This document shows, piece after piece, positions 9,781 to 54,714 of a DNA stretch of 64,000 nucleotides. The DNA lies in the NCBI RefSeq assembly GCF_030028105.1, contig NC_092398.1, forward strand, positions 28,986,424 through 29,050,423. Reading direction: 5' to 3'. The DNA comes from Mobula birostris (lineage: Eukaryota). Position 1 is the first letter of the stretch. Every line of letters starts with the position of its first letter. Below the pieces are notes generated by a model that worked only from the letters and a program-made list of their open reading frames with translations, did not search any database and was not told where the DNA came from. A program made the translations under genes and the position numbers.

Positions 9781-9841
9781 CAATTTCCTCTCCCGTTGCC
9801 ATGGGCAATAGCAGGGCCATTAAGAAGCCAAATAGGTCCAT
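9781..9841 (-). CDS. Signal-peptide exon (exon 1) of the left MHC alpha-type gene
   Basis: cagacATGG start, MDLFGFLMALLLPMATGEEI plus one G, then a gtgagt donor. The 61-nt phase-1 exon joins exon 585-857 in frame (G+TG=Val). A TATA-like CATAAA lies about 60 nt upstream (9901-9906). Confidence 0.78.
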
Positions 9842-11899
9842 GTCTGCGGATGGCTCCTCTCTCCAGGAGCAATAAAATGATGTGAACTGGGACTGTCCAG
9901 TTTATGAACGGGGCTTAGATTTTTGCTGACTACACAAGACATGGTGAAATAATTCAACTCCACTGCTAGTGTGACGATTTTATGAGTAACATTAACTTGA
10001 CAGCTACAGTAACAATCGTTAACAGGCAGTGGTTCAACTCTCAAACCGTTCTTCATGAAGTAGCACGTTTAAATATACTTTCAGGAAATTTTAGACCTCA
10101 AGGCACAGAGCAGTTATTGAAAGTGGCGATTTTGTCAAGTTAAAGTGTTTTGTGAAGTCTGTGTTTGGATTTACTTCACAGGATGGCAGATTTTGTAACG
10201 GTATTAAATCATGCCACATTCCAATTTACTTATCACGTGTGCATTGAAACATTACTCAATGGCTACTTTATTAGATACCTGCTAAATTGTTTGTTTGTGT
10301 TCTTCTGCTGATGTTGCCCACCCTCTTCAAGGTTTGACGTGTTGTGCGTTTAGAGATACTCCTCAGCACACCACTGTTGTAACGCGTGGTTATTTGAGTT
10401 GCTGTCGCCTTCCTGTCAGCTTGAACCAGTCTGGCCATTCTCCTCTGACCTCTCTCATTAACGAGGCACTTTCGCCCACCGAGCTGCCGCTCTGTGGATG
10501 TCTTTTTTGTTTATCACACCGTTCTCTGTTAACTCTAGAGACCGTTGTGCATGAAAATCCCAGGAGATCAGCGGTCTTTGAGATACCCAAATCGTAACCA
10601 TCTGGCACCAACGGTCATTCCACAGTCAAGTAATAATTTAGATTACATGTATTTCGAGATCAGCCATTCCTCCCTTTCGAGCCGCACCACCCAGCAACCC
10701 CCGATTTAACTCTGGCCTAATCACAGGATAATTTACAATGGCCAATTAACCTACTGACCAGTAGGTCTTTTGATTGTGGGAGGTAACCAGAGCATTGGGA
10801 GGAAGCCCACGTGGTCACGGCGAGAACGTACAAACTCCTTACCAGCAGCGGCGGAAATTGAACCCGGGTCGCTGGTACCGTAAAGCGTTGCGCAGGCAGA
10901 CTTCTTCCTCTGAGTTTGGGGGAGACTAGAATTAGATATCGTGAGCTGAGGGTTGAAACGTTTAAGCGGAACGAGGGGGGATCCTCTTCACTCAGAGGGC
11001 GGTGAAAGTGTGGAACGATCTGTCAGCAGGAGTGGTGGGCGTGGGTTTGGTTGCAACACTTGGGAAATTTGGGTGGGTACATGGACGGCAGGAGTAATGG
11101 AGGGCCAAGGTCCAGGTGCAGGTTGATTGGGCTAGGCAGAATAACAGCTCGGCATGGACTAGATGGGCCAAAGGGCCTATTTCTGTACTGGATGACCACC
11201 CGTCAGCCAGAACATCCTCAAGAGGTGGTGACTCAAGAAGTTGGCATCTGTCGCCAATCTCTGGGACGTGCCCTCTTCTTGTTCATACCATTGGGAGGAG
11301 ATACAGGAGCTGAAAACACACACTCAATGATTCACAAACTTCTTCCCCTCTGTCATTGGAGTTCTGAATGGACATTGAACCCATGAGCAGCACCTCATTA
11401 TTCTCTTGTCTGGTTTTTTGCACTAGGGATGGTGGTAGAGTCAGATACATGAGGGACATTTAACACAAAGACACATGGATAAAAGAAACATGGAGGGGCG
11501 TGTGGGAGACAAAGGTTAAATTGATCTTGGAGTGGTTTGTAAGGTCAGCCCAACAATATTCACAGTACATTTATTATCAAAGTATATGTATACTTTATAC
11601 AACCTTGAAATTCGTCTCCTTATCGGCAGCCACAAAACAAAGAAACCCCAAAAAACAAATTTAAAGCAAAAGACCGACAAACACCCAATGTGGTGAGAGA
11701 ATAAAAATAACAAATTGTGCAAACAATAGAAGTAAGTAAATAGCATTTAGAATGAAAGTGAGTTCTCAGGGACGAAGCCCAGCCATTTGGCCCATCGAGT
11801 CTACTTTGTCATTCAAGCCTAGCTAATTTAGCATGCCTCTCAATCCCATTCTCCTGCCTTCTCCCCGTAACCTTTAATGTCCTTACCCATCGAGAACTT

Positions 11900-12539: not shown

Positions 12540-13190
12540 CATGTGGACATATAAATACCTGGGGATACGAATTGACAATAAACTGGACTGGTCTAAAAAC
12601 ACTGAGGCTGTCTACAAGAAGGGTCAGAGCCGTCTCTATTTCCTGAGGAGAGTGAGGTCCTTTAACATCTGTCGGACGATGATGAGGATGTTCTACGAGT
12701 CTGTGGTGGCCAGTGCTATCATGTTTACTGTTGTGTGCTGGGGCAGCAGGCTGAGGGTAGCAGACACCAACAGAATCAACAAACTCATTCGTAAGGCCAG
12801 TGATGTTGTGGGGATGGAACTGGACTCTCTCACGGTGGTGTCTGAAAAGAGAATGCTGTCTAAGTTGCATGCCATCTTGGTCAATGTCTCCCATCCACTA
12901 CATAATGTACTGGTTGGGCATAGGAGTACATTCAGCCAGAGACTCATTCCTCCGAGATGCAATACAGAGCGTCATAGGAAGTCATTCCTGCCTGTGGCCA
13001 TCAAACTTTACAACTCCTCCCTTGGAGGGTCAGACACCCTGAGCCAATAGGTTGGTCCTGGACTTATTTCATAATTTACTGACGTAATTTACATATTACT
13101 ATTTAACTATTTATGGTTCTATTACTATTTATTATTTATGGTGCAACTGTAACAAAAACCAATTTCCTCCGGGATCAATAAAGTATGACT
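12540..13190 (+). mobile_element. Rex1/Babar-like LINE 3' fragment. Related pieces at 22370-23270(+), 32200-32680(-) and 38900-39340(+)
   Basis: YKYLG…LDWSKNT…QSRLYFLRR…FYESVVAS RT C-terminus; aataaagtatgactatga tail. Confidence 0.8.
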
Positions 13191-21830: not shown

Positions 21831-23609
21831 AAACTTCTGTCACCTGCCCTAATTTGACAAACTCTATCCCATCTCGTCCTTTTACAGCATGGGAGTCCCA
21901 GTTAATGTGTGTAAAGTTAAAATCACCTTCTATAACAACCTTATGTTTCTTGAAACTGTCTGTGATCTCTCTACAGATTTATTCCTCTAAATCCCTCAGA
22001 CTGTTGGGTTGTCTGTAATATAGTCCCATGAACATAGTCATACCTTTCTTTTTCTCAGAGTGCCTCACTAGACGAGTTCCCCAGTCTGTCTCGATTGAGC
22101 ACTGCTGTGACATTTTCCTTGACTAGTAATGCCACCTCTCCTGCTTTAAACCATCCTACTCTGTTGCATCTAAAACAGACCCTGGAATATTGAGCTGCCA
22201 GTCCTGCCCCTCCTACAACCAGGTCTCACCAATGGCTATAATATCATAACTCCAAGTGTTAATCCATGCCCTAAGCTCATCCACCTTTCCTACGCTACCT
22301 CTTGCATTGAAATATACACAGCTAACTGTACACCCATGATTGTATAGCCAGGTTTCCATCAAACTCAATATATAAACTTGCTGATGACACCACAATTGTA
22401 GGCCCTATCTCCGATAATGATGAGTTTGAGTACAGAGAGGAAATTAAGAACCTAGTGAACCTGGCGAAGACAATAACCTATCCCTCAACTTCAGCAAGAC
22501 GAAGGAATTGGTTTTTGACTTCAGACGGAGTAGCGGACCGCACAACCCCATTTACATCAGTGGTGCGCAAGTGAAACAGGTCAAAAGCTTTAAGTTTCTT
22601 GGGGCCAATATCACAAATGACCTGACTTGGTCCAACCAAGCAGAGTCCACTGCCAAGAAGGCCTACCAGCGCCTTTACTTCCTGAGAAAGCTAAAGAAAT
22701 TTGGCCTGTCCACTGAAACCCTCACTAATTTTTATAACTGTGGAAAGCATTCTTCTTGGGTACATCACAACCTGGCATGGAAGCTGTCCCGTCCAAGACC
22801 GGAAGAAACTGCAGAAGATCGTGAACACAGCCCAGCACATCACACAAACCAATATTTGGTCCTTGGACTCACTTTAACACGCACACTGTCAGAGCAGTGC
22901 TGCCAAGATAATCAAGGACACGACCCACTCAGCCAACACACTTTTCGTCCCTCTTCCCTCCGGGAGAAGGTTCAGGAGCTTGAAGACTCGTACAGCCAGA
23001 TTTGGAAACAGCTTCTTTCCAACTGTGATAAGACTGCTGAACGGATCCTGACCTAGATCTGGGCCGTACCCTCCAAATATCCGGACGTGCCTCTTGTTTT
23101 TTTTTCACTACCTTACTTTCCCTTCTCTATTTTCTAATTATGACTTATAATTTAAAGTTTTAACATTTACTATCGATTTGTACTCCAGGGAGCGCGAAGC
23201 GCAGAATCAAATATCGCTGTGATGATTGTACACTCGAGTATCAATTGTTTGGCGACAATAAAATACAGTGAGGTAATGTAAAGTTAAAGGTCAGGACACT
23301 CAACCTTTAGATTCCTGGCTCAGTCTGAGCTCTTACCAACATCTGTCTCAACAATCTCTCCGCTAGCTGTTCTGGCACTCTAGTTCCCATCCCCCTGCAA
23401 CTCTAGTTTAAACTCCACTGTGAAGCACCAGCAAACCTTCCCACTAGGATATTAATCCCCTCCCCGTTCAGGTGTAAACCATCTCTTCTGTACAGATCCC
23501 ACCTTCCCATCTCTCGCATTTCAGCCACTAAAGCTTGTAACTCCTCCAGAGTTGTCATAGATCTCTTAGTGTCCTCCCTCACTTGTCCCCTTCTGGCATT
23601 GTCATCCAA

Positions 23610-30975: not shown

Positions 30976-31225
30976 CTATCAATATTATGTATCGCAATGT
31001 ACTGCTGCTGCAAAACAACATTCATGACCTATGTCGGTGATACTAAACCTGATTCAGAAATAATAGTGCTGTCACTGGCTTGAATTTATAATAAACGTAT
31101 TTTTGTTAAAGAATAAAGGTGGGGGTACTGTTCCCGGCACTTGTAGAATTGGCTGCAGTCCAAGGTCAAAATAACTTCCTCTGTTCAATGTGAGCTTGTA
31201 TTCAATCATCCAGTTAACCACTTAC

Positions 31226-31535
31226 AGTTCAGGGTCAGAACATTTTGGTAAACGCTCTCTGCAATGAAAGGGACGAAGGCTTGGTATGGTTGACTTCAAT
31301 GACAGCCTGGGGGTTGCTGTGGTTCAGGCCTCTGATGAAAGCTTCCAAAAGTGAAAAGCTGGCCCCAAATTTCCTCGCAGAGAAATCAACGTAGATGACA
31401 TCTTTGCCGTCGTAACCAAATCACAGGTCCGTTTTCGAGAACCATGGAGCTGTGCTGGAGTAGATTGTCCAGCTGATGTACATCCCAGATAAACACTAAT
31501 TAGAAGGATAGTTTAAGAGTCATCTCAGAGCCATT
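31226..31535 (-). pseudogene. Decayed MHC beta1 (WB-like) or class I alpha2-like exon
   Basis: Acceptor ctcattcccaactcag and donor T|gtaagt bound 310 nt (net frameshift). The pieces read xWL*DDS*TILLISVYLGCTSAG / L*FGYDGKDVIYVDFSARKF...AFIRGLN / GCH*SQPYQAFVPFIAESVYQNVLTLN. GC and GYDGKD match the class I alpha2/W beta1 motif; several stops. Confidence 0.7.
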
Positions 31536-33559
31536 CTGAGTTGGGAATGAGTTACTTAAGACAAGGTGATTTCTATCTCCTGAGTTGCAGACTGCATCTA
31601 TCAGTTACAGTTTCAATCTCTTTCCTTTTATTTTAGACATCACAACATTAATGCCTCAACAAGCTCTATAGAGCCATACAGCATAGAAACAGGCCTTTCA
31701 GCCCAACTGGTGCATGCTGGCCAAGATTCACATCCAAACCAATACTACTTGTCCATATTTGGCACACATCATTTACCCTGTTTGCACTCCCTGCCTTCCC
31801 CCCTTTTCCCTCTTTCCCACCTTGAAATCTTTCTTATCCATGTACCTTTCAAATGCTTCTCTTCCACCTGCCTCAGTCAATTCCTCTCGTAGTTTGTCGT
31901 ATATAGACACACATAGCTCTCCAACTGGGACAAGGCCTCTTCTCATTACAATCACTGGGATGAGGTTCAGGAGGCTGAAGAGCCAGCTTCTGCCATCAGA
32001 TTTCGGAACAGTTCATGAATCCACGAACACTACTTTGCTGTTCTTTTGTTTTTGCGCTAATTTATGGTCTATGCACTGTACTGCCGCTGTAAAACTACAA
32101 ATGAACAGAATCAGATTTATTTTCACCGGCGTCTATTAGCAGCGGCAATAAATGATTTTGGAGAAAAAAAAGTAGATAACCAAGTAAATCAATTACAGTA
32201 CATTGAATAGATTAAAATATATTTTTAAAAAAGTGAGGTAGTGTTCATGTTTTCAATGTCCATTTAGGAATCTTATGGCAGAGGGGAAGAAGCTGTTCCT
32301 AAATTGCTGAGTGTGTGCCTTCAGGCTTCTGTACCTCCTTCCTGGCGGTAACAATGAGAAAAGATCATGCCCTGGGTGATGGGAGTCCTTAATAATGGAC
32401 ACTGCCTTTCTGAGGTACCGCTCCTTGAAGATGTCTTGGGTACTACGGAGGCTAGCACCCAAGATGGAGCCGACTACTTTTACAATTTTCTGTAGCTTCT
32501 TTTGGTCCTGTACCTGCCCCCTACCATACCTGACAGTGATGCAGCCTGTCAGAATGCTCTCCAGAGTACATCTACAGAAATTTTTAAGTGTTTTAGGTGA
32601 AAAACCAAATCTCTTCAAACTCCGAATGAAATATAGCCACTGTGTTGGCTTTTTATAGCTGGATCAATATGTTGCAACCAGGTTAGGTCCTCAGAGATCT
32701 TGACACACAGGACTTGAAATTGCTCACTCTCTCATTGTGTCCTAAACGAAACTTACAATTTAAACTGATTCTGATACTGACCACCCTCTGGGTGAAAGGG
32801 TTGCTCCTCAGGCTCATAGTAAATCTCTCTCCTCTCATTTTAAACCTACATTCTAGTTCTTGATTCCCCATCACTGGGGAAAAGACAGCACATTCACCCT
32901 AAATATGCTGTTAATGATTTTGGAAAGTGGAAATGAGGGGGATCAAACTGAGCAAGGTTAGGAAGGAGGAGGAGGAGGAGGAGGGAGGAGCAATCTCCAT
33001 AAATTCCCTCCATTTAAGTGACACCCAACGCCATCCCCTCTCATTTGTCCCTCTCACCCACCTTTTCCACTAATCTCCCAGACACCTCGATAACCATCTC
33101 CCATCATAAACCAATTCCTCTTTCCAGTTATTCCCTCTCTCCTCCTGCACACATCTCCTGAGAATCAGTCTGCACTGCCTCCTCACACACACCCCTTCAG
33201 CACAAATCTCTGAAACCACCCCCTTACAATCAGCACCTCCCCTCATCACTCACTCCACATTTACCTACTCACATTTTGCACAGACCTGGTTAGCTTCAAC
33301 CAGTCCTCCAACCCATCAGTCCCCCCATCAGCAATCACCTTCCAACCCCTGCACCACCCAGCCACACAACTCCCAGGCTCTGCATCTGTCTCATTCTTTC
33401 CACCCTCTGCACCATTCTTCACCCCACCCTCTGATCTACCTACTCAACACCTAATGCACCCACCCTTGTCAGTCCACGCCCTCTCCCTCTCCCTGGGCAC
33501 CCACACATCACTTTCATTATCTACAGCCACCCTTCTGAATCCATCTGCTCAACACCCTA

Positions 33560-34700
33560 TCCCTGCTCGGTCTAAACCGTGCAGATGAGCGCCACGCAGT
33601 TACTGAAATGCTCCCGCTCACATAGCCATCGTAGCTGTGCAGCTGGAATTTTCTTTAGTGCTGACTGCGAACGTGGATTCAGTTTTATGAATTAAATCAA
33701 ACGTAAATCGAGGAACAAACTAGAAGTGGAACATGTAGATGATCTGATGAGGGCTTAAGAAGTATCTTTCATCTGGATGTGAAATTAATCTGGATGACGT
33801 TTACAAGCAAAAGATTTGTAATAAAGACAGACAAGAAAAACTTTATGAAACTCATAAGATTTTCTTTGTTGTGCTGTATTTAATTATGCCCTTCAATTAA
33901 TACATAAAATAAAATGTATATGATTCTAAAAACGCAAACATGAGAAAATCTGCAGATGCTGGAAATTCAAGCAACCACACAGAAAATGCTGGTGGAACGC
34001 AGCAGGCCAGGCAGCATTATTAGGAAGAAGTACAGTCGACATTTCGGGTCGAGACCCTTCGACAGGACTAGCAGAAAAATAGAGCCAGTAAGAGATTTGA
34101 AAGTGGAAGGGGGAGGGGGAGATCTGAAACAATAGGAGAAGACAGGAGGGGGAGGGATGAAGCCTAGAGCTGGGAGATTGAGTGGCGAAAGTGATACAGG
34201 GTTGGAGAAGGGGGAGTATCATGGGAAGGAAGCCCTTGAAAGAAAGCAGAAAAGGGAAGGGAGCATCAGAGGAAGATGGAGAACAGGTGCTTTGTACTCC
34301 CCCTTCTCCAGCCTTGAATCCCTTTTGCCAATCAACCTCCCAGCCCTTGGCTTCATCCCTCCCCATCCTGTCTTCTCCTATCATTTCGGGTCTCCCCCTC
34401 CTCCTCCCACTTTCAAATCTCTTACTATCTCTTTTCTTCCGTTAGTCCTGACGAAGGGTCTCGACCCGAAACATCGACTGTACCTCTTCCTATAGATGCT
34501 GCCTGGCCTGCTGCGTTCCACCAGCATTTTGTGTGTGTTAAATGTATGTGATTGTTCAGTTTTCATTCTAAATATTCATAGTATGTTATTTACACAAAAA
34601 AATAAAGAGCTACGCAGTTTTCAGGCCATGTAAAAATTTCCAGCTCAGAACAATGGTTGGTCCATGCAGCTGTAAAAAATATTAGAGCAAAAATTGCATC
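33560..34700 (+). mobile_element. hAT transposase 3' remnant, interrupted by a Penelope-derived repeat (33925-34540)
   Basis: ADCERGFSFMN*IK…RNKLEVEHVDDLM dimerisation-domain motif at about 33660-33755. Confidence 0.65.
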
Positions 34701-34909: not shown

Positions 34910-35965
34910 CCCAACCTCTGTAACTGCCTATCCCTCACCCCCCATCCTCTACAACTGTCTATCCCTCACTCCTCCCATCCTCTACAACTGTCTATCCCTC
35001 ACCCCTCCCATCCTCTACAACTGTCTATCCCTCACTCCTCCCATCCTCTACAACTGTCTATCCCTCACCCCTCCCATCCTCTACAACTGTCTATCCCTCA
35101 CCCCTCCCATCCTCTACGACTGTCTATCCCTCACCCCTCCCATCCTCTACGACTGTCTATCCCTCACCCCTCCCATCCTCTACGACTGTCTATCCCTCAC
35201 CCCTCCCATCCTCTACGACTGTCTATCCCTCACCCCTCCCATCCTCTACGACTGTCTATCCCACACCCCTCCCATCCTCTACAACTGTCCATTCCTCACC
35301 CCTCCCATCCTCTACAACTGTCTATCCCTCACCCCTCCCATCCTCTACAACTGTCTATCCCTCACCCCTCCCATCCTCTACAACTGTCCATTCCTCACCC
35401 CTCCCATCCTCTACAACTGTCTATCCCTCACCCCTCCCATCCTCTACAACTGTCCATTCCTCACCCCTCCCATCCTCTACAACTGTCTATCCCTCACCCC
35501 TCCCATCCTCTACAACTGTCTATCCCTCATCCCTCCCATCCTCTACAACTGTCTATCCCTCACCCCTCCCATCCTCTACAACTGTCTATCCCTTACCCCT
35601 CCCATCCTCTACAACTGTCCATCCCTCATCCCTCCCATCCTCTACAACTGTCTATCCCTCACTCCTCCCATCCTCTACAACTGTCCATCCCTCACCCCTC
35701 CCATCCTCTACAACTGTCTATCCCTCACCCCTCCCATCCTCTACAACTGTCTATCCTTCACCCCTCCCATCCTCTACAACTGTCCATCCCTCACCCCTCC
35801 CATCCTCTACAACTGTCTATCCCTCACCCCTCCCATCCTCTGCAACTTCCTATCCCTCACCCCTCCCATCCTCTACAACTGTCCATCCCTCATCCCTCCC
35901 ATCCTCTACAACTGTCTATCCCTCACTCCTCCCATCCTCTACAACTATCTGTCCCTCATCCGCCC
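34910..35965. repeat. 33-bp minisatellite (VNTR), about 31-32 units
   Basis: Unit ctcacccctcccatcctctacaactgtctatcc, with variants (gac/aac, ccattc, atc). It produces the spurious LTPPILYNCLS repeat ORF. Confidence 0.95.
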
Positions 35966-35984: not shown

Positions 35985-36520
35985 CCATCCCGAGTCAGCC
36001 AGGCACCGCTGATTGGCTGCCGCGTCTTCCCGCCAGACAGCCCACCCCCACCACCACACTACTCCCTCCACCGGGCGCGCGCATCACCGCCGGCGGGCCG
36101 CTCGCGCTCCCCGGGCGCGCGCCATCACAGACGTCGGGCCAGTCGCGCTCCCGCCGGAGGCTTGGCTTGGGTGGAGGAGGAGGAGACTGAGGTCGGTGGG
36201 CGGGTTGAATGGCGGCGGCGTCTCCTCCTCCTCCCGCCGCTCTTTTGCTTTCGGGACGGTTTCTGCCATGGGTCGTTATCCCGCTGCTTGGGCGCTCCTC
36301 CTGCTCCTCCGCCCCTGTTCGGGGACTACCTACAAAGTGGCCGGTGAGTCGATTCCTGTCGCTGCGATCGCCGCCCGGTCAACTTGCTGTAAAGTTGTTG
36401 CTAAGGGTGGGATCTTGCTGAGTAGACGCCCCTGGGGTCATCAACCGTGTCTTGGGGTGGGGAGGGCGGTAGCGTTCGGATCTTGCGAAGCACATTCTAC
36501 TTGGCGTCTTGCTGGCTTGG
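35985..36520 (+). promoter_or_regulatory. CpG island/promoter of WA with an inverted CCAAT (Y-box) CTGATTGG at 36009-36016
   Basis: Dense CpG and GC boxes against a CpG-poor background; CTGATTGG preceded by an AP-1/X2-like CGAGTCA at 35991-35997; spans exon 1. Confidence 0.65.
36268..36343 (+). CDS. WA: MHC W-category alpha chain, exon 1 (signal peptide)
   Basis: Kozak gccATGg; MGRYPAAWALLLLLRPCSGTTYKVA plus G; donor gtgagt; 76 nt, phase 1; lies inside a CpG island. Confidence 0.88.
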
Positions 36521-39339
36521 TGTTAAACTACCTGGTTCGTCCAAACTTGGAAAATTGTGTGAAGGATGGGAACCAAGTTTAATATCAAGATATTGAAATT
36601 GGGATGTGGAAGCTCGAGAAAAAGATGCACAGGAGATTTACCAGGATTAGAGATCAGGAGCAGACTAGGGCTTTTCTCTTTGAAGTGAAGGAGGATGAGA
36701 GGTGACTTGATAAAGGTGTACAAGATGACAAGAAACACCTATAGTAGAGTGGACAGTGGAAGACTTTGCCCCAGGGTGGCAATGGCTAACAGGAGGGGGC
36801 ATACCTTTAAGGTGTTTAGAGGAAAGTACAGGGGGAATGTCAGAGGTAGTATATTTAGGTGCATAATCTGGCACTGCTAAGGTTGTCATTAGGGACATTT
36901 AAGAGATCTTAGATACGCACATAGCTGACAGAATAATGGAAGCTGCTGTATGAGGGAAAGTTTAGATTGACCCTGTAGTAGATCAAGGGGTCGGCACAAC
37001 AATGTGGACCAAAGAGCTGGTACTGTGATCTACTGTTCTATGCACATGGTTGGTGAGATCTTGCTGTGGGCGTGCAGGGATGGGGAGGGAGGAGTTGTGT
37101 TGTGGGATCTGTTGGGTGGGGGCCGTACTATGGATTGAATGGGAATTTGTTTGATTGTGCATTGCCCGTGTTGCATGGATGCTTCCCATGTGCAGACTGG
37201 GTGGGGATTGTTGTCGTGTTATAGACTTGTACAACACACAACTGGACCCTTTTGCCCACCATGTGTTTGCTGACGTTTTTTTTCTATGTATGCTAATTCA
37301 CCCCTCCAACCCCCACCATATCCTGATAATACATGTACTTTGAATATACTTACACACCTTGCCCCTTTACTCCCCTGACCAAATACCTTTCAAATGTAAT
37401 GGTTGTGCCAGTTTCCACAGCCTCCAGTGGCAGCTCATTCTACATATCAACCATTCTTTATGTAAGAAAAAAAAGCGTATCCCTTCATGTCCCCTTTGAA
37501 ACTCATTCCTTTCACTTGAAATCTGTGCCCTCTTGTTTCCACTGTGTATGGATTGGTTGGGATGTTGTTGTGTAACTGGTGAGTGGGATCTTGCCATGTA
37601 CACAAGGTTGGAACTTGTCACAGAGTGGGATCGTGTTTGTGCTTTGTGCACGGGTGAGTTAGACGACAGATGACTTGATAGAGTTGTACAAGATGGATGG
37701 GCAATTGATCTGCACCTTGTATTTTCACTTGCTTCATTCATGAGTTCAAGTTTTTTGTGTCATTCGATATGAGAGGTCAGTGGAGAATGGCCAGACTGGT
37801 TCAAGTCGACAGGAAGGCGACTAACTCAAATAGCCATGTGTACTAACAGTGGTGTGTAGAAAGACATCTTCCAGCACGTCGAAACTTGAAGTGGATGGCA
37901 CAGCAGAAGACCATGTACTTACACTCGGTGGTCACTGTATTAGGTACAGGAGATACCTAATAAAGTGGTCACTGAGGGTGAGTAGATGTTTGTGTGGGTT
38001 CGTGTTTAATGTCCATACTTAAGGTCCGGTCTCCAGTTGCATTGGAATTCCTCATCCTTGACCAAGACCTCACTCTTGTCAACATCACGTGGCAAATGAT
38101 GTACAAGAGCCACTCCACATTAAAAATATTCACAATCTGTAGTAGCATATCACCCTTAGCCTAAGAAGACATGATCATAAAAACATTGGTATAATGCAAG
38201 TAATTCTAAGATTCAAAGTACATTTTTTTAATCGAAGTGTTTATACAGAATACACTTGCGAGTGGACAACACATAGAATTTCAAACATCAAACCGGGGGT
38301 CTAGTAGTATTCAGTTCAGTGCCCTGCCACTAGCTCGCTACAGGCTGCAGAGAAAAGCATTCTTTGCTAAGCGACGAAGATAGCATAGATTGCCCCGATC
38401 AAATCACTCAAAGGTAGCAAAAAAAGAGTAACCAGAATCCAGGGACATATGCCCAAAGCATGGCAACACTGTCCAGCAGAATCTTCAGACTGTGTTGGCA
38501 GTTGACATCAGCGACGCTTTTCTCTGTATGTTTTAATGTTTCAGTATACATGTGACAAATAAAACTAATTTATATTCTTTACTTTTGATTTCTGTTAGCC
38601 TCACCAAAGAGCATTTTACAGACATTAAATCTGCCCTCTCACATGCAAACATCCAGCATTTTTTCTTGCTGAGTGACAATGACTGCTTTGGTAGGGTCTG
38701 AGGAGGATTTGGGACTGTGAAACACAATAAGCACTCTGCACTTCGTGGCCACTTTATAAGGTACCTCCTGTACCTCCGGTACCTCATAAAGTGGCCACTG
38801 AGTATATGTTCATGGTGTTCTGCTGCTGCAGCTCATCCACTTCAAGGTTCAACATGCTGGCCTGAAACTCCTGTAATTTACGTATCGCAACACTAGGTTT
38901 ACAGTGGAGACATTCTCACTGGCTCTCCACTCAGTCTTGCAGCACCTGGACATCAGCAATACCTACATCAGGCTGCTGTTTATTGATTGCAGCTCAGGGT
39001 TCAACACCATCATGTTCTCAGTACTAATCAACAAGCCCCAAAATCTGGGCCTCTGTACTTCTGTCTGCAGATGGATCCTTGACTTCCCATAGTCAATGCA
39101 GATTGGAAATAACATCTCCTTCTCACTGGCTCACTTCAAGGATGTTTGCTTAGCCCACTGCCCTACTCTACACCCACAACTGTATTTAGGTACAGTTCAA
39201 ATGCTGCCTAGAAAAATTGCTGTTGATTGTTGGCAGAATTTTAGATGGCGACAAGGAGGTGTACATGATTGAGATAGATCAGTGGGTTGGGTGGTGTCGC
39301 AACAGCAACCTTGCACTCAATGTCACAAAGACAAATTGC

Positions 39340-41050
39340 GTGTCCTACCCATGTACACCAAGGTCCATCTGTCCTTTGACGCTACCCACCATTCATAGTG
39401 TGTGTGTCCTACAATTGTGGAGTGAAATCCCATTGTCCCTTGACACTTCCCAACATTCACTGTGTGTGTCTGTCGTGGTTTCTCATTTCTTACAAACAAC
39501 AAGGAGACGCAGAAAATCCTTCAAGACGTTTTAAACTTTAATTTGCAAATCAAAGCTGAGACAATCAGAAAGCTAGTAGCTGACTGCCCATCGAGGCTTG
39601 TACACAGCATTTTTTATAGCAATCTCCTATTTTAGCTACAATCCAGATGGCCTGTGATCACATATCATCAATACATCTGCTCTCGACCTTCCACTATTGT
39701 TTTACTCCCCAATTTAATTATGTCCTAGTTTACTTTTTAGACCAGGTGTCCCCTCATCCCTAACCACAGTTATTTCTTAATTGGTCTTGTTTTGACATAC
39801 TGCCACATATTTCATTACCCTACTCGCCACCGTTATTTTCCTACTTGGTTTCATTCTAGTTCTCTTCCTGAATTAATAGTGATTAGGTCAAAAGTCATGG
39901 CTACATAGTGAATACCCTCTATTCAGCTAGCAGTGGTTACATAGTAAATATAGAAAATATAATGTGTGCATTTGAGTAAATACTGAAATACTGTTGAGTA
40001 AATACTGTAAATACTGTAATACATAGAAAATACAATGTATGCGTTTACATTTTCCAATATGTCCAACCCTTCTACAATGAGGTCCCTCTGTTCCTTGATA
40101 CTCTACACCATTGTATACCATCTACCTTTGTATACCATCTGCCCCAGGATATTCCCACATCATACACGGTGTGTGCCAACAGCCTTGTACTGCCAACACC
40201 CTCTGAAACTCAACACTGCCCACTGTTCACTATGTGTCTCTTACCCTTGTACACCGAGGTCCCTCTTTCCCTCAATTCTCCACACCATTCGTAATGAGTG
40301 TCCTACCCTCGAAGACCGAGGTCACTCTGTCTCTCGACACCCCTCACCAGTCACGTAGTCTCTCCGACCCTTGTACACAGAACTGCACTTGAACCTCGAC
40401 TCTCCCCGCCACTCATAGTCTGTCTTTCCCTCTACACTGTGATGCCTCTGTCCCTTGACAATCCCCACCATTCAATATGGGTGTCCTACCCTTGTACACT
40501 GAGATCCCTCTATCCCTCGATTTTCCCTAAAATAAACAGTGTTTGTCTTATCCTTCCAATGCACACAAAATACTGGAGGAACTCAGCAGACCAGGCAGCA
40601 TCTATGGAAAAAGTACAGTTGATGTTTCAGGCCGAAACCCTTCAGAAGGACCCTTTATCCCTCTGCTATAAGGTATTGGACTGAAATGTCGACTGTACTA
40701 TTTTCTATTGATGCTTGTTTGATTTTCTCTTGTTTGTCCTACGCTTGTACACCGAGATCCCTCTATCCCCCGACACTCCCTATCATAAACAGTGTTTGTC
40801 CTACCCTAAAACACTGAGGACCCTTTATCCCTCAGCATTCCCTAACATAAACAGGGTTTGTCCTAGCCTTGGATATTGAGGTCTCCCGTCCCTTGACTTC
40901 CCACTACTTATGGATTTTGTCTTTTGGATTTTGCCCTTGTACAGCGAAGTCTCACTATACTTTGATACTCCCCATAGTTCACTCGGTGTGCAACCCTTCT
41001 ACACCAAGGTTCCTCTGCTCCTGGATACTCTACACCAGTTACGACGTGTG
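39340..41050. repeat. Degenerate ~60-65 bp tandem repeat in WA intron 1, broken by insertions
   Basis: Recurring gtgtcctacccttgtacac(c)gaggtccctctgtcccttgacactccccaccattca at 39340-39470, 40050-40550 and 40730-41040. Confidence 0.65.
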
Positions 41051-41231
41051 CCAGCTGAACCTCTTGACCATTTTTGCATGTTTTTATGCTGCCACATGAT
41101 TGGCTAATAAGATATTTATGTTAATGAGTACATATACCTAATGTGGCCACTGAGTGTTGTTTAAACATTAGTTGCAAAAATTGACAATGTGATTAAAAGT
41201 CTTTTTTACAATAATCTTTTTATCCTTTCAG

Positions 41232-41495
41232 AGACAGACACATTGGAAGTCACCATCTTCTTTGCAGATGACCCCAGCCTACCCAAGGGGGCAGCCGAGT
41301 TGAAGACTCAGGATAGAAGCATTGGTTACTATGACACCACGTTACCGAGAGCTCAGTTTCACTTGGCTAACTTAGAACACTTCCGTAAAACTATTGATAG
41401 CCTGTTGGAAGAGAATAAGGACAACACAATCGCATTGGCAAAGAGCCTGATGGATCAGGCGATGATGTTAACCAACAACTCTCTCCCCCCAAACG
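41232..41495 (+). CDS. WA: MHC W-category alpha chain, exon 2 (alpha1 domain)
   Basis: tatcctttcag acceptor, G|gtgagt donor, 264 nt, phase 1-1: ETDTLEVTIFFADDPSLPKGAAELKTQDRSIGYYDTTLPRAQFHLANLEHFRKTIDSLLEENKDNTIALAKSLMDQAMMLTNNSLPPN, with a C-terminal NNS glycan site typical of alpha1 domains. Confidence 0.88.
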
Positions 41496-43477
41496 GTGAG
41501 TCAAGATAGGAACGTAAACAGCTCAGTGTAGTGACTACCATCAGCCCAATAAAGTGTCCTCAGTATGGATTTAGCTTAAAGTACAGGCCCTTTGGTCACC
41601 ATGTTGTGATGACCTTTCAAACTACACCAAGATCAATCTTAAAAACGCAAACAACAGGAATTCTGCAGATGCTGGAAATTCAAGCAACACACATCAAAGT
41701 TGCTGGTAAACGCAACAGACCAGGCAGCATCTCTAGGAAGAGGTACAGTCGACGTTTCAGGCCGAGACCCTTCATCAGGACTAACTGAAGGAAGAGTTAG
41801 TAAGAGATTTGAGAGTGGGAGGGGGAGAGGGAGATCCAAAATGATAGGAGAAGACAGGAGGGGGAGGGATGGAGCCAAGAGCTGGGCAGGTGATTGGCAA
41901 AGGGGATATGAGAAGATCATGGGACAGGAGGTCCGAGGAGAAAGACAAGGCTGGGGGAGAACCCAGAGGATGGGCAAGGTATCATGGGACAGGAGGTCAA
42001 GATCAATCTAACCCTTTCCACCTACACAGTCCTCTAATTTCCTTTCATCCGTGTGCCTCTCTAAGAGTTTGTTAAATGTCCCTAATTTATCCACATCCAC
42101 CACCGCCTCTGGTAGGGTGTTCCAAGCGCCCACTAACTAGAGTTTTGTAGAGCTGCAACATTACCACCCAGCTCTTGAACTCAAAACTCTCCATCTGACG
42201 TTACCTCTCCACCCGCCCCCTGCACTTTCCTCCAAACACCTCAAAGTTATGCCCTGCTGCATTAGCCATTTCCACCCTGGGAAAGAGTCTTTGGCTGTCC
42301 ACTCTGTCTATGCCTCTTATTATCTTGTACACCTCTATCAAGTCACTGCTCATCCTCCTCTTCTCTGAAGAGATAAGCCCTAGCCTACTCAACCTATCCT
42401 CATACTGTAAGGGATGTTTTCTAATCCAGACACCATCCTGTAAACCTCCTCTGCACCCTCTCTAAAGCTCTGCATCCTTGCTATAATGAAGCGACTAGAA
42501 TTGAACACAAACAAGTGTGATCTAAGCATTACCTCGCGGCTCTTGAACTCAAACCCTCAACTGACAATGGCCGACACATCACAACCCCTTCTTAACAATC
42601 ATTTCACTGGAAATACTTTAGCTGGAAATTTGAGTAAATGGCTGGCACTGTGGTACGCTGACATAATTAATCCTTTGTTGTGTCAGGATACCACTGGCAG
42701 TTAGTTTCTCTCCCGTGGCTCCATTAGGTGACTGATGTGAACATTGATTGTCAAAGTGGGTCCAATGGCAGATCATCAGCAAGAAACCACTTCACCCTTC
42801 CTGCAGCAAAATGTTTCGGGCTGCTTTATTTCTATGCAGTAATACTGAATTTCAAAAGTAATTTTTATATCATTGGCGTTGCTAACGGGAATTACATGGA
42901 CTTGGTTCACTATCTTCCCACTATGGTTGTGTTGCCGGCGGTGAGTTGGCAATCTCGGGGAACAGCGGATGATGTACTCTTCTTGCTGCTGCTGTCAGGA
43001 AGAGATACAGGAGCCTCAGGACTGACACCACCATATTCAGGAATAGTTGTTGGCTATCAACCATCAGGCTCTTGAATCACTGGTAATAATTTCACTTGCC
43101 CCATCACTGAAATGTTTCCACACCTATGGACTCGCTTTCCAGGACTCTTCATCTCATGTTCTCAATATGTGTTGATTATTTATTTCTTGTTGTTATTTTT
43201 TTCCTTTTGTATTTGCACATTTTGCTGTGTTTTACAGACAGGTTGTTTTCCACCCTGTTGGGTTTGGTCTTCCATTGATTCATTTATGGTTATTGGATTT
43301 ACCAAGCATGCCCATGAGAAATCAAATTCCAGGGCTGTATATAGTGAAATATATGTGCTTTGATAATAAATTTACTTTGAATTCTAGAAGTTTGCATCCA
43401 GGACTGATACAAATTAATAGATAATAATCATCATCTAGTGCAACTGACAAAAAAAAATCTTTAATTTGTCCTTTTAG

Positions 43478-43759
43478 AAATCGGTGAGCTCTATCTGTAC
43501 TCAGAGAAACCAGCTGTCTTCGGGAAGGTAAACACTTTGACCTGTTTCGTCAGCGGCATTTTCCCACCAACCCTAACTGTAACGTTACAGAAGAACGCGC
43601 AACCTGTCAATGGCGAAGTTAACTCCTCACACCTCTCATTTGGCAAAGATTGGCGATTTCATGTGCTCCACTACACATACATCCAGCCAGCAGAAGGTGA
43701 CATATACTCCTGTAGAGTGCTCCATAAAATCAGCAAAGAGGAAAAAGTAATTTACTGGG
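43478..43759 (+). CDS. WA: MHC W-category alpha chain, exon 3 (alpha2 Ig-C1 domain, beta2-microglobulin-like)
   Basis: tttgtccttttag acceptor, G|gtaaga donor, canonical 282 nt: EIGELYLYSEKPAVFGKVNTLTCFVSGIFPPTLTVTLQKNAQPVNGEVNSSHLSFGKDWRFHVLHYTYIQPAEGDIYSCRVLHKISKEEKVIYW. Two Ig cysteines; residues match b2m Y10, L54, F56 and W60. Confidence 0.93.
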
Positions 43760-45362
43760 GTAAGAGAATGTTATGGTTGTTATTCTATAGATTTATTGAG
43801 TATGTCCACAGGAAAACGATAGGTACTTTGATGCTAAAGTTACTTTTTGAACTTTGAAAATACTCTGGGGTAAGTGATACAGGGCAGCAGAGTAGCATGG
43901 CAGTTAGCGCCGTGGTTAACAACACCAACTGTAAGATCAAGGTTTGATTCCTACTGCGGACTGTGAGGAGTTTCTATGTTCTCTCCGTGACCGCATAGGT
44001 TTTGTCCAGGCACACTGCTTTCCTCCCATGTTTCAAAGATTATGGGTTAAGGTTAATGAGTTCTGGGTTGCTATGTTGGCACCAGAAGTGTGGCAGCATT
44101 TGCGAGCTGCCCTCAGCACAATCCTCACTGTTATGATTGGATGCATTTCTCTGTATGTTTTGATCTTTCAACGTACACATGGCAAATAAAGCTTATCTCT
44201 GAAATCCAGCTCATTGCCTGCAGTGCTGACTGACAGTATTTTCCAGTGGAAGTGTTGAGATCAGGAGCTCAGCAAATACAAGGACAAGCTTCCCTTAGCA
44301 CATTTCAGCTAGCGTTGTACCACTCCAACCCAATCTGGAGCCGAGCCATGGATTCACTAATGAGGGGTAGTGCTGAAGCACTCCAACTGGATGAGATTGG
44401 TTTTAACCCTCGTGTTGCTCTGTTAGGTCAGTGAGAGGAAAACCAGCTCATGTTCCTGTTTACACTCAGTATCCAGCAATTCCCAGTGGAACATGAGGAT
44501 GCAATGTGACTATTTCGGTTTTCTGTTGATCAACCCTGCTGCCAATATTGATACAGCACAGAATAGACCCTTCCAGCTGCACCACCCAGCAACTCCCAAA
44601 TTTAACACTAACCTAATCACAGGACAATTTATAATGACCAATTAACCCATCAACTAGTACGCCATTGAACTGTGGGATGAAACCGGAGCACTTGGTGGAA
44701 ACCCATTTGGTCATAAGGAGAACATACAAATGACTTGCACACAGCTGCAGGAATTGAACCCAGTCACTGGTACTGTATCGTGCTAACCTCTGCACTACAG
44801 TGTTTTCGTTTATTGATAGCCATTTAGTCATTTAGTCATGGAAAAGTACAGCACAGAAGTAGGACATTTGCCCCACCTAGTCCATGCCAAACAATTTAAA
44901 CTGCCTACTTCCCTCGACCATAGCCCTCCAAACCCCTACATCCATATACCTATCCAAACTTCTCTTAAACGTTGAAATCAAGCTTGCATGCACCACATCT
45001 GCTGACAGCTCGTTCCACACTCTCACAATCATCTGAGCGAAGTAGTTTCCCCTTATCTTCCCCTTAAACTTTTCACCTTTCACCCTTCACCCATGACCTC
45101 TAGTGCAGCATCACTCAACCTCAGTGGAAAAAGCCTATCTATACTCCTCATAATTTTGTATCTAAAATCAGTCTAGGGCTGATCCTAGGAAAACTTTGGA
45201 CACCTGGAACCTTTGGAACACCTGCTTCACTATTGGAAAGTATATTCAGCTGAGAAAGGGAAATGGGGAAGAGGACAATTTAGTTTTGCCAGCTCATCTT
45301 TGTTCAAACTGATTTAAAAACTAGTTCCTCGTTCAAAATATGAGTATGTGCTTTGTTCACAG

Positions 45363-45535
45363 AACCAGAAGAACAAAGTAGTGCTGAAGAAATGGATACA
45401 AGCCAGATTGCTGTTTTGATCTGTGGGCTGATTATAGGAATACTTGGCACAGCAGTTGGACTCTTCTTATGTTTTCACTTGCGACTGCCTGGCTGCGACT
45501 CTTGGATAGTCTGGATCAATCCCTCTTCTCAATAA
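45363..45535 (+). CDS. WA: MHC W-category alpha chain, exon 4 (connecting peptide, TM, cytoplasmic tail, stop)
   Basis: tttgttcacag acceptor; EPEEQSSAEEMDTSQIAVLICGLIIGILGTAVGLFLCFHLRLPGCDSWIVWINPSSQ*; class II alpha TM motif C-GxxxGxxGxxxG. The four exons sum to 795 nt = 264 aa plus stop. First clear downstream AATAAA seen at 46697-46702. Confidence 0.9.
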
Positions 45536-49450: not shown

Positions 49451-52400
49451 ACCCACTGACTTCCTGTAGCGTGTTGTGAGTTTTGCCAAGTGATCGTGCT
49501 TTGTTTTTTAGACCATACAAGAGACACACAATTGTCAGGGATTTACAAAAGTATCTAAACAACTTCAAATTAAAATAGGATTGCTGTTGTCTACAAATCA
49601 CTCGATTCCCTGGGGGGGGGGGGAGTTGGTAGTGCCCCATTCACAGAAATCCCCCGTTGTGCCATAGAGATTGCATGTTAACCTCTCCATGGACACTCCA
49701 GCTCGAATGTAATACTGGAAGAGGTCAGTCGGCTCAAGCAGAGACCTTGACTGCCTGCTGCCTGGAACTGCGCGTGGCCATTTTGGCAAGGCCCAGGATC
49801 GAGCCTACCAAGAGATCCCTGAGTTACAGCCCCCACCCTCCCACGCTGTGGGACTGTGGTTGATGAGCATGGGGTTGAGGTGCAGTCAGACCTTGAGGAG
49901 CAGCTTCTTCGAGCATACAAACAGGAGCTGCAACTTCTCACACTCCATATACATTCAGTGGCCACTTCATAAGGTACACCTGCTCGTTCATACAAATATC
50001 TAATGAGCCAATCATGTCACAGCAACTCAATGCATAGGAGCATGCAGGCATGTTCAAGAGGTTCAGTTGTTCTTCAGAACAACTTCAGAATGGGGAAGAA
50101 ATGTGATCCAAGTGACTTTGACGGTGGAATGAATTCTGGAGCTAGTTGGGATCATTCGAGTATCTCAGAAGCTGCTGAGAAAAGCTTTCCCCACCATTGA
50201 GCACATCTACTTGAAATGCTGTCGTAGGAAAGCAGCATCCATGATTAGGGACTCCCACCACCCAGGACATGCTCTCCTCTCGCTGCTGCCATCATGAAGG
50301 TGGTACAGGAGCCGCAGGATAACTTCACTTGCCCCATCATTGTAAATGCTGACACAACCAATGGACTCATTTTCAAGATTTCTTCATCTCTTGATCTTGG
50401 TATTTATTGCTTATTTATGATCATTTCTTCATTTTAGTATTTGCAGAGTTTGTCATCTTCTGCACAAAGTTCCCCCGAGTTGGTGCGGTCATTCATTAAT
50501 TCTTGTATGGTTATTGTATGCCAGCAAAGGAAAAAATCCCAGGGTTGACATATGGCGTATATGTACTAAATTTACTTTGAAATTTGATCTCTGTTGGATT
50601 TTCATGCACAGCAGTTTACAGAGAATGGTGTGAAAAAGGAAAAAAAAGCCAGTGAGTGTCAGTTCTGTGTCTGAGAACGCCTTGTCAATCAGAGAGTTCA
50701 GAAGGGAATGACCATACTGTTTCAAGCTGACAGGAAGCTGACAGTAATTCAAATAGCCATGCATTACAACAGTGGGGTGCAGAAGACCATCTCTGAACAC
50801 ACAGCATGTCGAACCTTGAAGAGGATGGTCTACAGCAGCAGAAGACCAGAAATATACAAGCGATATCTAATAAAGTGGCCAATGTGTGTATTTTAGTTTT
50901 CTGAACTTGAATCATCATGCTGCTGGATGACAAAGTGTGTTGTACAGATTTTATTTGAAACCACAGACATTCTTCATTCTTCCAAGCAGGTGCGGCAACA
51001 GAAAGATTTTGCTCAGAGGTTAATTGTACCTTAGGATGTAGGATTCGGCACCTCTTGATAACTGCTTTGCAGGCACTGACAACACTGGTCTCCAGCACTG
51101 CAGTTAAACATAGGCAACAAGATGCTGGAAATCCAGAACAACAGACACACACAAAATGGTGGAGAAATTCTGCAGGTTAGATAACATCTATGGAGGAAAA
51201 TAAACAGTTGATGTTTCAGGCTGAGAGCCTTCATCAGGACTGGAAAGGAAAGGGAAAGAATAAGGAGGGGAGAAGAAGAAGCTGCCAGGCCATAGGTGAA
51301 GTCGGAGAAAGGTGGTTGGGTGGAGGAGGCTGGATGAAGTGAGAAGCAGGGAGGTGATAGGTGGAAAAGGAAACAGCTAAAGAAGGAGGAATCTGATAGG
51401 AGAGAATAGTTGACCGTGGAGGGAAGGCAAGGAGAAGGAGCACCAGAGGGAGGTGATGGGCAGGTGAAGATAAGCGAAGAGGTAAGAGAGGAGCCAGATT
51501 GTGGAATATATGAGGAAAAGGTTGAGGAAACAATTTCCTGAAGGTATAAAGTCTAAATTTATGGTATCAGGTTGGAGGTTACCCATAGAGAATATGAGGT
51601 GTTGCTTCTCCAGCCTGAGTCTGACCTCATCATGGGAGTAGAGGAAGTCGTGGACCGACATGTGGGAGTGGGAATCATGATCATCATCATGTGCCATGTC
51701 GTAGGATGCGGATGATCATGGTCATAGGTTCTTGGCAAATTCTACAGAAATAGTTTGCTATTGCTTTCTTCTGGGGAGTTGTTTTACAAAACGAGTGATT
51801 CCAGCCATTATCAATACTCTCCAGAGATTGTCTGCCAGGCTGTTGTCAATTGTCAATGGCCACAAAATCAGGATTTATGCCCCATGAATCTGACAGGGGG
51901 CTAAGCAGGTGCTACACCTTACCCAGGGGTGACCTTCATGCCAGCAGAGGGAAGGAGCACCTTACACCTTTGGTCAACGTATGTGAATAGGAAATCAAAC
52001 TGAAATGGGTTAAACACAAAGTAAAAAGCGGCATTGTGAGGCAGGTGATTTCCAATGCATGCCAGACAAACGAGAACAGAGACGGCAGTCACCAGGTATC
52101 CAAGTACCGGCAAGTTGTGAATTTGACAGTTCGATTTCAAGCTTCTGTCGTGCATTCAGAGGCAGGCCTCGGCATCTGGCCAAGTTCTTCACACAGACAG
52201 TCGTCCTCACCGTGTGAGCAGAGTTCTGAGAAGAAAAGAGAAGAGGGATAATGAAGATATGGACTGTGTAATAATTAAGACAGCACCAGTCAGCAGCAGT
52301 ATGTAACATTTCAGGATATAATGCTGCTGCTTTATAATGGATTAGGCAATCTGCATTTGGAGCATCGCGAGCAGTTTTGGACCTAAGCTAAGAATGGATG

Positions 52401-52571
52401 TACTGACAGTGGAGTGGTTCCAGAGGAGGTTCATGAGAATGATCCTGGAAATGAAAGGGATAAAGTATGATGAGCAGTTGACAGCTCTGGGTCTATACTC
52501 ACTGAAGTTTAGAACAATGGCGAGTGGGATGTCATCAAAACCTACTAAATATTGAAAGGCCTGGTTAGAAT

Positions 52572-52789
52572 CGCCAGCTGGTGGCGTAGTGGCATCAGCG
52601 CCGGACTTCGGAGCGAAGGCTCCCGAGTTCGAATCCAGCCGACTCCCTTGCTCGCTTTCCATCCATGCTGGGTTGAGCATCGAGCTAGCAACTCGGCCTC
52701 GTAAAAACGAGAAAGCCTGCTAAGAAAACGCCATCATGACTGAGTCCCAATGACTCCACTCGGAGTCAAGGGGTTTCTTCTTTCTTCTT
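52572..52789 (+). mobile_element. Young tRNA-derived SINE with an 11-bp TSD, inserted into CR1
   Basis: A box TGGCGTAGTGG, B box GTTCGAATCC, (TTC)n tail; ctggttagaat at 52561-52571 and 52790-52800. Confidence 0.85.
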
Positions 52790-54714
52790 CTGGTTAGAAT
52801 GGATGTGGAGATGTTTCCTATTGTGGGGGAGTCTAGGACCAGAGGGCACAGAATCCGAGTGGAGGGATGTCCCTTTAGAACAGAGATGAGGAGGAATTTC
52901 TTTAGCCAGGGGGTTGTGAGTCTGTGGAATTCATTGCTACAGGTGGCTGTGGAGGAGAAGTCATTGCTTATATTTAAAGTTGAGCTTGGAAGGAAGGAAG
53001 TTGACATTCCTTCCTGAACTTGATGAGTTCTTGATTAGTAAGGGCGACAAAGGTTATGGGGAGAAGTTAGAAGAATGAAGTTGAAAGGAGGATAAATCAG
53101 CCATGATGGAATGGCGAAATAGACATGATGGGCTGAATGGCCTAATTATGATCCTATGTCTAATAGTTACGTCCTCCTGACCCCAGGTTCCTGTGTGCAT
53201 AGTGCACCCTAGTTAACTTTTCTGATGTTTACCAGACATAAAATGGGGTGTATGAGATGTCCAGGGGCGGGGTGCAGTGGGGGGTAGCACTGCTGGTGAA
53301 GAAGCTTGTCGTGTCCATTCTGGGGCAGCTCAGTCACACTGGTCCCCGCCTGACACTCAGCTTTCACATGCAGCTCCAAGTAGCTGTATAGGTGTGACAG
53401 CGGCCACACCCCAGTACATTGCTTCGATGGACAGGTTAAACCAGGAGAGGGTAGCCGGCGGCCTTATACCACAGTGAGATAGGAACATGCCCATCCGAAC
53501 GTGCGAAGAGATGCGGAATGAGTGGATGAGGTCAACAGTGAGATTCAACAGCCACACTTCATTGAGAGGTACAGAAGAAGTCATGGTCGTCTACTGCAAT
53601 GAAGGAAGACGTCAGTTATGACAACTACTCATACCACTGGTCCTGGACCTTCAAATTTCAGAGAGTGGTTCTGCCCCAGTGCAGCAGTATTTCCACTTTA
53701 AAAACTGTCCAGCACTGGTTTCAAACTCATTATCAGATATCCAATCAATCATCCAGAAACAAGGCAAACAAGAGAAAATCTCTAGATGCTGGAAGTCCAA
53801 GCAACACACATAAAATGCTGAAGGAACTCAGCAGGCCAGGCAGTGTCAATGGAAGAGAGTAAAGGGTTGATGTTTTGGGCTAAGACCCTTTAGCAGGACT
53901 GGAGAAAAAAAGATGAGGAGTAGAGTTCTGGGGGGTCCTGTTGAAGGGTCTCAGCCCAAAATGTTGATTCTTTTCCATAGATGCTGCCTGTCCTGCTGAG
54001 TTCCTCCAGCATTTTGTGTGTGCTGTCCAGGTACAAGGTATTACTGACACTGGTGAAGTGATTGCACAGCAAAGAATTTGCACTGACTCCAATATGCTGA
54101 CTTAATGTCACTTTCCCCCATTTCAGACATGAATAATTGTTACTCTTGATGACATGGCTGTGGACAGCACAGTAGGTTGTTGTAGGTTACAACAGGACAT
54201 TGGCAGAATGCAGAGCTGGACCCAGAAAACTGAAAAGATTCACATTGGAAGGTTGATCTTGAAGTCAGAGTACAGGGTTAATGGCGGTATTCTCAGCAGT
54301 GTGGAGGACAGAGGGATCTTTGGTCCATGTTGCCAGTCACCTCAACGTTGCTATGCAAGTTGAAATTGTGGTTAAGAAGACATATGGTATGTTGGCCTTC
54401 ATTAGTCGAGGGATTGAGTTCAAGAGCTGACAGGTAATGATGCAGTTCTACAAAACCCTGGTTATACCACACTTGGAACAGGTTGTTCAGCCCAGGTCTC
54501 CTCATTATAGGAACGATGAAGAAGCTTCAGAGAGAGTGCAGAGCAGATTTACCAGGATGCTGCCTAGATTGGGGAGCATGTCTTATGAGAATAGGTTGAG
54601 TAAGTCAGAGCAAAGGAGGATGAGAGGCTACTTGAAAAAAAGGTGTATAAGAGGCAATGATTGAATGGATAGCCAGAGCCTTTTTCCCAGGGCAGTAATG
54701 TCTAATGCGACCCA

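Follow-up and report, generated by a model that had tools for sequence, protein, structure and literature searches.

The minus strand at positions 31226–31485 of the 64-kb window (the whole stretch of DNA analysed here) carries what is very probably a solitary, dead beta1 exon of a WB_DS1-like gene, which once stood head-to-head with the WA_DS10-like gene now found 4.8 kb away. WA and WB genes belong to the W-category, a family described in 2021 (Okamura et al., PMC8713811). The exon body is about 260 nt long and runs from GG-ATG (G-M-Y-I-S-W…) to …L-T-L-N plus one phase-1 base. We consider it dead because it contains an in-frame TGA and a 1-nt deletion, lacks an AG where the ancestral acceptor would have stood, and is accompanied by no leader, beta2 or transmembrane (TM) exon. 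An earlier note on this DNA had given the exon as 31226–31535 (310 nt), which proved too long at its 5′ side, as the body covers 31485–31226.

The relic was compared with living WB proteins. The Ig exon present at 63.5–64.0 kb of the window (minus strand) recovers Mobula proteins annotated “class II beta chain-like”, and the query set gathered from it consists of ray and shark relatives, P0004 to P0013. Since the basking shark protein P0013 comes close to matching the row labelled “great white shark WB DS1L” in Dataset S1 (Okamura et al., 2021), the query proteins are taken as WB_DS1-like chains. In a frameshift-aware alignment, the minus strand from 31485 to 31226 is colinear with the full 86-residue beta1 domain of the ray and shark proteins, the colinearity spanning 86 to 88 residues. 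The entire 86-aa domain was aligned for P0004–P0009 and P0012, and part of it for P0010, P0011 and P0013. Scores of the ten beta1 queries were between 49 and 114, compared to 24–25 (+/−4, maximum 45) in 200 control regions of the same window, which places the relic 10 to 22 SD above the controls for the eight 86-residue queries, and 5.8 and 9.2 SD above them for the two WBs with a short beta1. Using tblastn of WB proteins against the window, 31486–31280 was matched in a single frame with E values down to 9e-7, and a WB beta1 profile HMM found its sole match in the 64 kb at 31486–31295. The proposal that a fossil MHC beta1 exon lies here is therefore upheld, by an end-to-end alignment (z = 5.8 to 22) as well as by tblastn and by a profile match unique in the window. 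The same frameshift-aware procedure applied to a gecko class I protein (P0014) gave a chance-level score (z = 0.7), so that the similarity of the relic is specific to WB, and not to class I generally.

Searches starting from the relic itself were less informative. Reading 31150–31620 on both strands and in all frames yielded a 61-codon stop-free piece at 31420–31238 (minus strand). This 61-aa piece had no Pfam match, neither to MHC_I nor to MHC_II_beta. With phmmer, the PDB returned a single, non-significant match (E = 0.59), to residues 114–160 (alpha2) of a class I chain, and 1.84 billion representative proteins returned five, all internally repeated proteins with summed weak repeats and none of them MHC. 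A protein atlas search with the piece gave nothing usable. Living WB beta1 domains, for their part, do match Pfam MHC_II_beta (PF00969): three ray domains with E values of 1e-5 to 1e-8, above the cut-off, and P0013 with 4e-3, under it, that is 3 out of 4 living domains above. They also match weakly the alpha2 part of MHC_I, and the relic is thus tied to the MHC fold by transitivity.

Identity between the relic and living WB beta1 domains is only 23–35% (26–35% for the ray domains), compared to about 58–60% for living ray WBs among the ray genera compared. In a tree of beta1 domains, the relic was placed beside a Hypanus WB (support 86/82) on a branch of 2.2 changes per column, a placement that we judged unreliable. 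With such identities and such a branch length, any finer placement or dating of the relic would be tentative. Its layout is of the DS1 type, being gap-free over strands S1 to S4 and lacking Cys at column 12, like the WB DS1 rows of Dataset S1.

The stop-free piece contains FGYDGKDVIYVDF (31382–31420, minus strand, translation), an interdomain motif of W-category or class I type, with G32, Y33, D34, G35, K36 and D37 in the numbering of Dataset S1. According to Okamura et al., 2021 (PMC8713811), the beta2-m-like W61 contacts A32, G35 and D37 of alpha2/beta1, residues characteristic of class I and the W-category. In their Dataset S1, class I alpha2 rows read (A/G)YDG(K/E/R)D, as in YAYDGKDYIAL, cyprinid (teleost) WB rows read YGYDGKDIMHVDL, and classical class II beta1 rows read YN(R/Q)EE, as in YIYNREEY. 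The relic, with G32-Y-D-G35-K-D37, has the W/class I pattern at beta1 columns 32, 35 and 37. Both the presence of a class I-type GYDGKD motif, on the minus strand at 31420–31382, and its lack in classical class II beta1, where YN(R/Q)EE occupies the same columns, had been correctly read by the earlier note. Its further match of the motif to class I alpha2 holds for the beta2-microglobulin-contacting strand, which is common to both, but nothing significant is found outside the motif (z = 0.7; E = 0.59). Living Mobula WB beta1 domains (P0004–P0007) read FAYNGE(T/V/A) at these columns, with N34 and no D37, whereas the dead exon keeps GYDGKD (31403–31420). A contact residue held characteristic by Okamura et al., 2021 would thus have been lost from the living chain that presumably pairs with the W61-bearing WA.

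Among known systems, the WB_DS1 and WB_DS1-like genes of cartilaginous fish resemble the relic most broadly, in beta1 length and layout, in an S2 strand without Cys, and in the (A/G)-Y-(D/N)-G-x-(D/x) pattern. WB_DS1-like genes also have a separate beta1 exon with a phase-1 donor, and a head-to-head arrangement with a WA_DS10-like gene as in the great white shark. The relic differs from the living members of this group by its stop, its frameshift, the absence of an acceptor at the homologous site and the lack of leader, beta2 and TM exons, and from the living Mobula WBs in particular by having kept D34 and D37. Teleost (cyprinid) WB beta1 has a core motif, YGYDGKD(I/V)MHVD(L/F), almost identical to FGYDGKDVIYVDF, a likeness at the level of the motif, but its column 12 is occupied by a conserved Cys, and its S2–S3 loop is longer. 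MHC class I alpha2 shares with the relic the (A/G)YDG(K/E/R)D strand contacting beta2-microglobulin W60/W61; the relic, by contrast, is without the GC…C disulfide cysteines, and forms an exon of its own, in the manner of class II, in linkage with a gene for an alpha chain. Compared with classical class II beta1, it has YDGKD instead of YN(R/Q)EE, lacks Cys15 and Cys79, and does not match Pfam MHC_II_beta.

We then come to the lesions. The body of the relic reads in one frame from a Gly codon at 31486–31484 (start G-M-Y-I-S-W). The TGA, at 31421–31423 (minus strand), stands where living WB beta1 domains have Q, K or R, and our guess is that it derives from CGA. The 1-nt deletion shifts the frame somewhere within 31272–31288 (minus strand), its exact place varying with the query in the frameshift-aware alignment; the sequence read after the shift, YQAFVPFIAESVYQNVLTLN, lines up with the final part of the living domain (…MPFAMEIIHQNLQALT). 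One extra codon is also present relative to living WB beta1. The “stops and frameshifts” initially reported in this exon are real, but amount to just one TGA, one 1-nt deletion and one extra codon.

At the 3′ side, a GTAAGT splice donor (31220–31225, minus strand) directly follows the phase-1 base 31226, so that the exon ends with AAC T before GTAAGT; this last base is in phase 1, as are the boundaries of the beta2 exon in the window's living WB gene. In the 5′ boundary zone (31486–31497, minus strand), TG is found (31487–31486) where the acceptor of a living WB is expected, and the nearest AG, at 31497–31496, does not fit the phase of the beta1 frame and is absent from one paralogous copy (31497 T>A). 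The acceptor position was deduced from protein isoform junctions only: comparing …SIAL-V-KPTIT in the beta1-skipping P0002 with …SIAL-G-MHIGQ in P0006 indicates that living beta1 exons start two bases ahead of the Met codon. The interval between the upstream AG and the GT (31495–31226) is 270 nt, a multiple of three, and contains two stops when read in phase from this AG. Of the two splice sites that had been described as kept, the donor is therefore intact and in the right phase, but the homologous acceptor position is TG, the nearest AG being out of phase. The “GC strand cysteine” (VYLGC) described along with them has to be abandoned, as it lies in another frame, upstream of the inferred exon start, and at a place where the beta1 domains of living ray WB_DS1-like chains are without Cys. 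Concerning the annotated X2 isoforms of Mobula WBs, P0002 skips the whole beta1 and P0003 uses a donor inside beta1; if real, these isoforms would encode groove-less beta chains.

The lesions are also supported by sequencing runs. Support was taken from contigs of public runs rather than from raw reads; such contigs drop rare variants, and the changes considered are those listed. Organism A is the same species (two runs); organism B (one run) bears the label of another species and diverges by about 3%. Organism A contigs match the window over 31180–31307 save one substitution (31245), and exactly over 31320–31465. In contigs of both organisms, among the differences listed, the TGA is unchanged and no indel is present in the frameshift zone. 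The earlier note had left room for assembly indels, in which case the exon would belong to an intact gene; the same TGA and the same frame in contigs of two species speak against consensus errors. A few other differences were seen. Position 31245 is C in all organism A contigs and T in the window, the main contig is short of 2 nt at 31515, and a low-depth contig skips 121 nt within the exon (31244–31366). Allelic or paralogous variation of the relic may account for them.

Between organisms A and B, nine substitutions were counted by hand within the exon, distributed 2/4/3 over the three codon positions, 6 of the 9 being non-synonymous. This is the pattern that neutral drift would give. Further decayed copies of the relic, approximately 5% and 8% diverged and including the immediate flanks, exist in both organisms, and one of them has an additional 1-nt deletion (31347) together with a 5-nt deletion upstream. 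Among the differences listed for the paralogous copies, none affects the TGA. As it is unchanged in all copies, again among the differences listed, the stop seems older than both the duplications and the species split. No RNA run was listed as containing the exon, and a putative RNA run (one small run, probably DNA) gave no contig on it, only on the flanking repeats.

No remnant of beta2 (Ig), TM or cytoplasmic exons was detected in 1–31 kb on either strand, using tblastn, blastn and profile HMMs. A blastn match to a beta2 exon around 29.3 kb (E = 0.076) was dismissed as chance, its translation being without Ig features. No leader exon was found either between the relic and WA (31.5–36.6 kb, both strands, as well as the 300 nt directly upstream), where scores equalled those of controls. 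The only beta2 and TM exons of a WB found in the window belong to a separate, living WB gene at 52–64 kb. That no Ig or TM exon exists in the transposon pile-up at 19–31 kb, as the earlier note had stated, thus holds across 1–31 kb on both strands, with LINE reverse transcriptase and endonuclease ORFs occupying 22–31 kb. Within this pile-up, ORFs 22508–23053 and 12541–13047 match Pfam ALKBH8_N (E ~1e-10); they are probably not a host gene, but a tail conserved among ORFs of a fish LINE/retroelement.

The relic is bordered by high-copy repeats on both sides, at 31000–31080 in its 3′ flank (summed contig word depth up to 7,800–11,000) and at 31648–31755 in its 5′ flank (up to 33,000–55,000). Depth over the relic is about 20–130 (bins 31108–31647), so that it forms an island of about 570 nt between them. 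Further towards WA, a 33-bp minisatellite (34910–35958, 31.8 copies, 94% match) separates the relic from the WA promoter. Its translation is a 480-aa pseudo-ORF in which LSLTPPILYNC is repeated, and it sits immediately ahead of the WA promoter, which is CpG-rich. A short repeat, translating as MLVERSRPGSI.RK.YSR.FGSRPF, is present as inverted copies at 33926–34566, in the gap that separates WA from the relic, and also at 41510–41785, in a WA intron.

The neighbouring gene, on the plus strand, is a living WA_DS10-like alpha-chain gene (36268–45532). Its exons were placed by the ORFs containing them: ATG at 36268, alpha1 in 41165–41506, alpha2 (Ig) in 43465–43854 and TM in 45344–45532. Its alpha1 reads TLEVTIFFADDPSLPKGAAELKTQDRSIGYYDTTLP, and matches the little skate WA DS10-like row, TLALTFFATDDPSLPDGVLEAKADGRSLGYYDTTLS, on which basis the gene was assigned to the WA_DS10-like lineage. 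The alpha2 exon matches Pfam C1-set with E = 2e-18, and retains L-S-F-G-K-D-W, that is the beta2-m-type L55/F57/W61. About 250 nt upstream of the ATG at 36268, a class II-style Y box, CTGATTGG (36009–36016), is preceded by GAGTCAGCC (35992–36000); from their sequence, the two may constitute an X2-Y promoter module within a CpG island (GC 0.66). Tail-to-tail with WA is the 3′ part (52140–63956, minus strand) of the living WB_DS1-like gene encoding P0006, with its cytoplasmic (52140–52232), TM (60657–60785) and beta2 (63675–63956) exons. This gene spans 18.4 kb, its beta1 and leader exons being past the end of the window; the tblastn identity of its beta2 is 100%.

The relic lies 4.78 kb from the WA ATG (36268), in divergent orientation, which agrees with the earlier statement that it points away from WA, 4.7 kb upstream. 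In the great white shark, three head-to-head pairs have been described, one of them being WA_DS10L/WB_DS1L (Okamura, Dijkstra et al., PNAS 2021, PMC8713811). The gene lists examined here place a C1-set gene head-to-head with the basking shark WB_DS1L gene (P0013), 276 nt upstream, while for Hemitrygon P0011 and M. hypostoma P0010 the only C1-set neighbour is tail-to-tail. As WA is DS10-like, and as sharks have WA_DS10L and WB_DS1L head-to-head, the relic has the lineage, the place and the orientation expected of the former partner. Lineage, position and orientation thus support the view that it was the partner beta gene of WA; the partnership itself is what we infer from them.

Four other explanations were weighed. 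That junk DNA would merely resemble a short MHC motif by chance has next to no probability. It could draw on the absence of Pfam matches for the 61-aa piece, the PDB E value of 0.59, the repeat artefacts from phmmer and the unproductive protein atlas search, but colinearity over 86–88 residues, z values up to 22 against 200 controls and a single HMM site in 64 kb argue strongly against it, and the location and orientation are those predicted. It is also extremely unlikely that the relic still serves as an exon in a functional WB gene, its stop and frameshift being assembly errors or being spliced around. The GTAAGT donor is indeed in the right phase, and the AG…GT interval at 31495–31226 is 270 nt long. 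Against this, contigs from two same-species runs and one second-species run have the TGA too and show no indel where the frame shifts, substitutions between the species have no codon-position bias, no contig of the putative RNA run (probably DNA) covers the exon, reading from the upstream AG meets two stops, and no leader, beta2 or TM exon was found.

A processed (retrocopied) fragment of a WB pseudogene is very unlikely too. By eye, leader-like LRR*KSPCL and LLN stretches can be seen just upstream, and a beta2-start-like L.L.C..FY just downstream. Upstream scores were nevertheless those of control regions, the living beta2, TM and cytoplasmic exons had no blastn match directly downstream, and the exon stops precisely at a canonical GTAAGT of correct phase. 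No significant intron-free, colinear alignment of a leader-beta1-beta2 cDNA was found across 31.0–31.8 kb. The last explanation takes the relic as a genuine WB beta1 pseudo-exon that was never the partner of this WA, but a dead fragment brought in by segmental duplication or transposon transduction, the head-to-head orientation being coincidental. Several diverged copies of the relic with their immediate flanks exist in the genome, high-copy repeats lie within about 150 nt on both sides, and WA has a living, tail-to-tail WB neighbour. Because of the copies elsewhere, this one may have come with a duplicated block rather than decayed in place, and no leader exon or shared promoter element physically links the relic to WA. 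Lineage and orientation match the shark WA_DS10L/WB_DS1L pair all the same, the sequence just outside the exon resembles unique intron, and the simplest reading of the extra copies is that whole units comprising relic and WA were duplicated. We therefore regard such a transported fragment as rather unlikely, and retain the former head-to-head partner of WA as the preferred interpretation.

Under the preferred interpretation, a WB_DS1-like beta gene would have stood head-to-head with the WA_DS10-like gene, as sharks still have. The stop would have appeared before the split of the two manta/devil-ray species, and before the segmental duplications that multiplied the relic. Neutral drift would have followed, leaving the relic with no function today, and its surroundings would have been filled by retrotransposons, other repeats and the minisatellite. 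The living WA presumably pairs with the intact tail-to-tail WB_DS1-like gene downstream. Two or three frame-breaking lesions, despite such divergence, are not easily explained by neutral decay alone. So few indels for so much divergence favour an old WB_DS1 sub-lineage that died fairly recently, rather than a very old corpse.

A more elaborate and tentative version of this history, which we consider possible without leaning towards it, is that the relic is the fossil of a shark-type WA_DS10L/WB_DS1L pair in rays, from a deep, extinct sub-lineage that kept GYDGKD. The head-to-head WB would have died before the amplification of WA and the speciation of manta/devil rays, and living WAs would have switched to convergent WBs without D37. 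If true, an MHC-type heterodimer would here be documented to have changed partners.

Class II beta pseudogenes reduced to a solitary exon 2 beside an alpha gene exist elsewhere, for example human HLA-DRB9. Like the relic, HLA-DRB9 is an isolated remnant of a beta1 exon, in an MHC block that has been duplicated and close to an alpha-chain gene that is still alive; the relic differs in MHC category and vertebrate class, and in having several diverged copies. The relic is, in this respect, an ordinary pseudogene of a known family in a known arrangement. Annotators are warned not to take this exon, or its paralogous copies, for missing exons of living genes, since all are fragments of pseudogenes. 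Its use is mainly that of an evolutionary marker for the rearrangement of the WA/WB pair in rays. W-category genes have been used to argue that class I arose from a class II-type heterodimer, and the head-to-head pairing of WA and WB is part of that argument. The present results suggest that the arrangement seen in sharks formerly existed in rays too, and that the beta gene of the head-to-head pair was lost there afterwards; a relic of that gene beside a living WA bears on how alpha and beta partners are kept or exchanged in MHC clusters.
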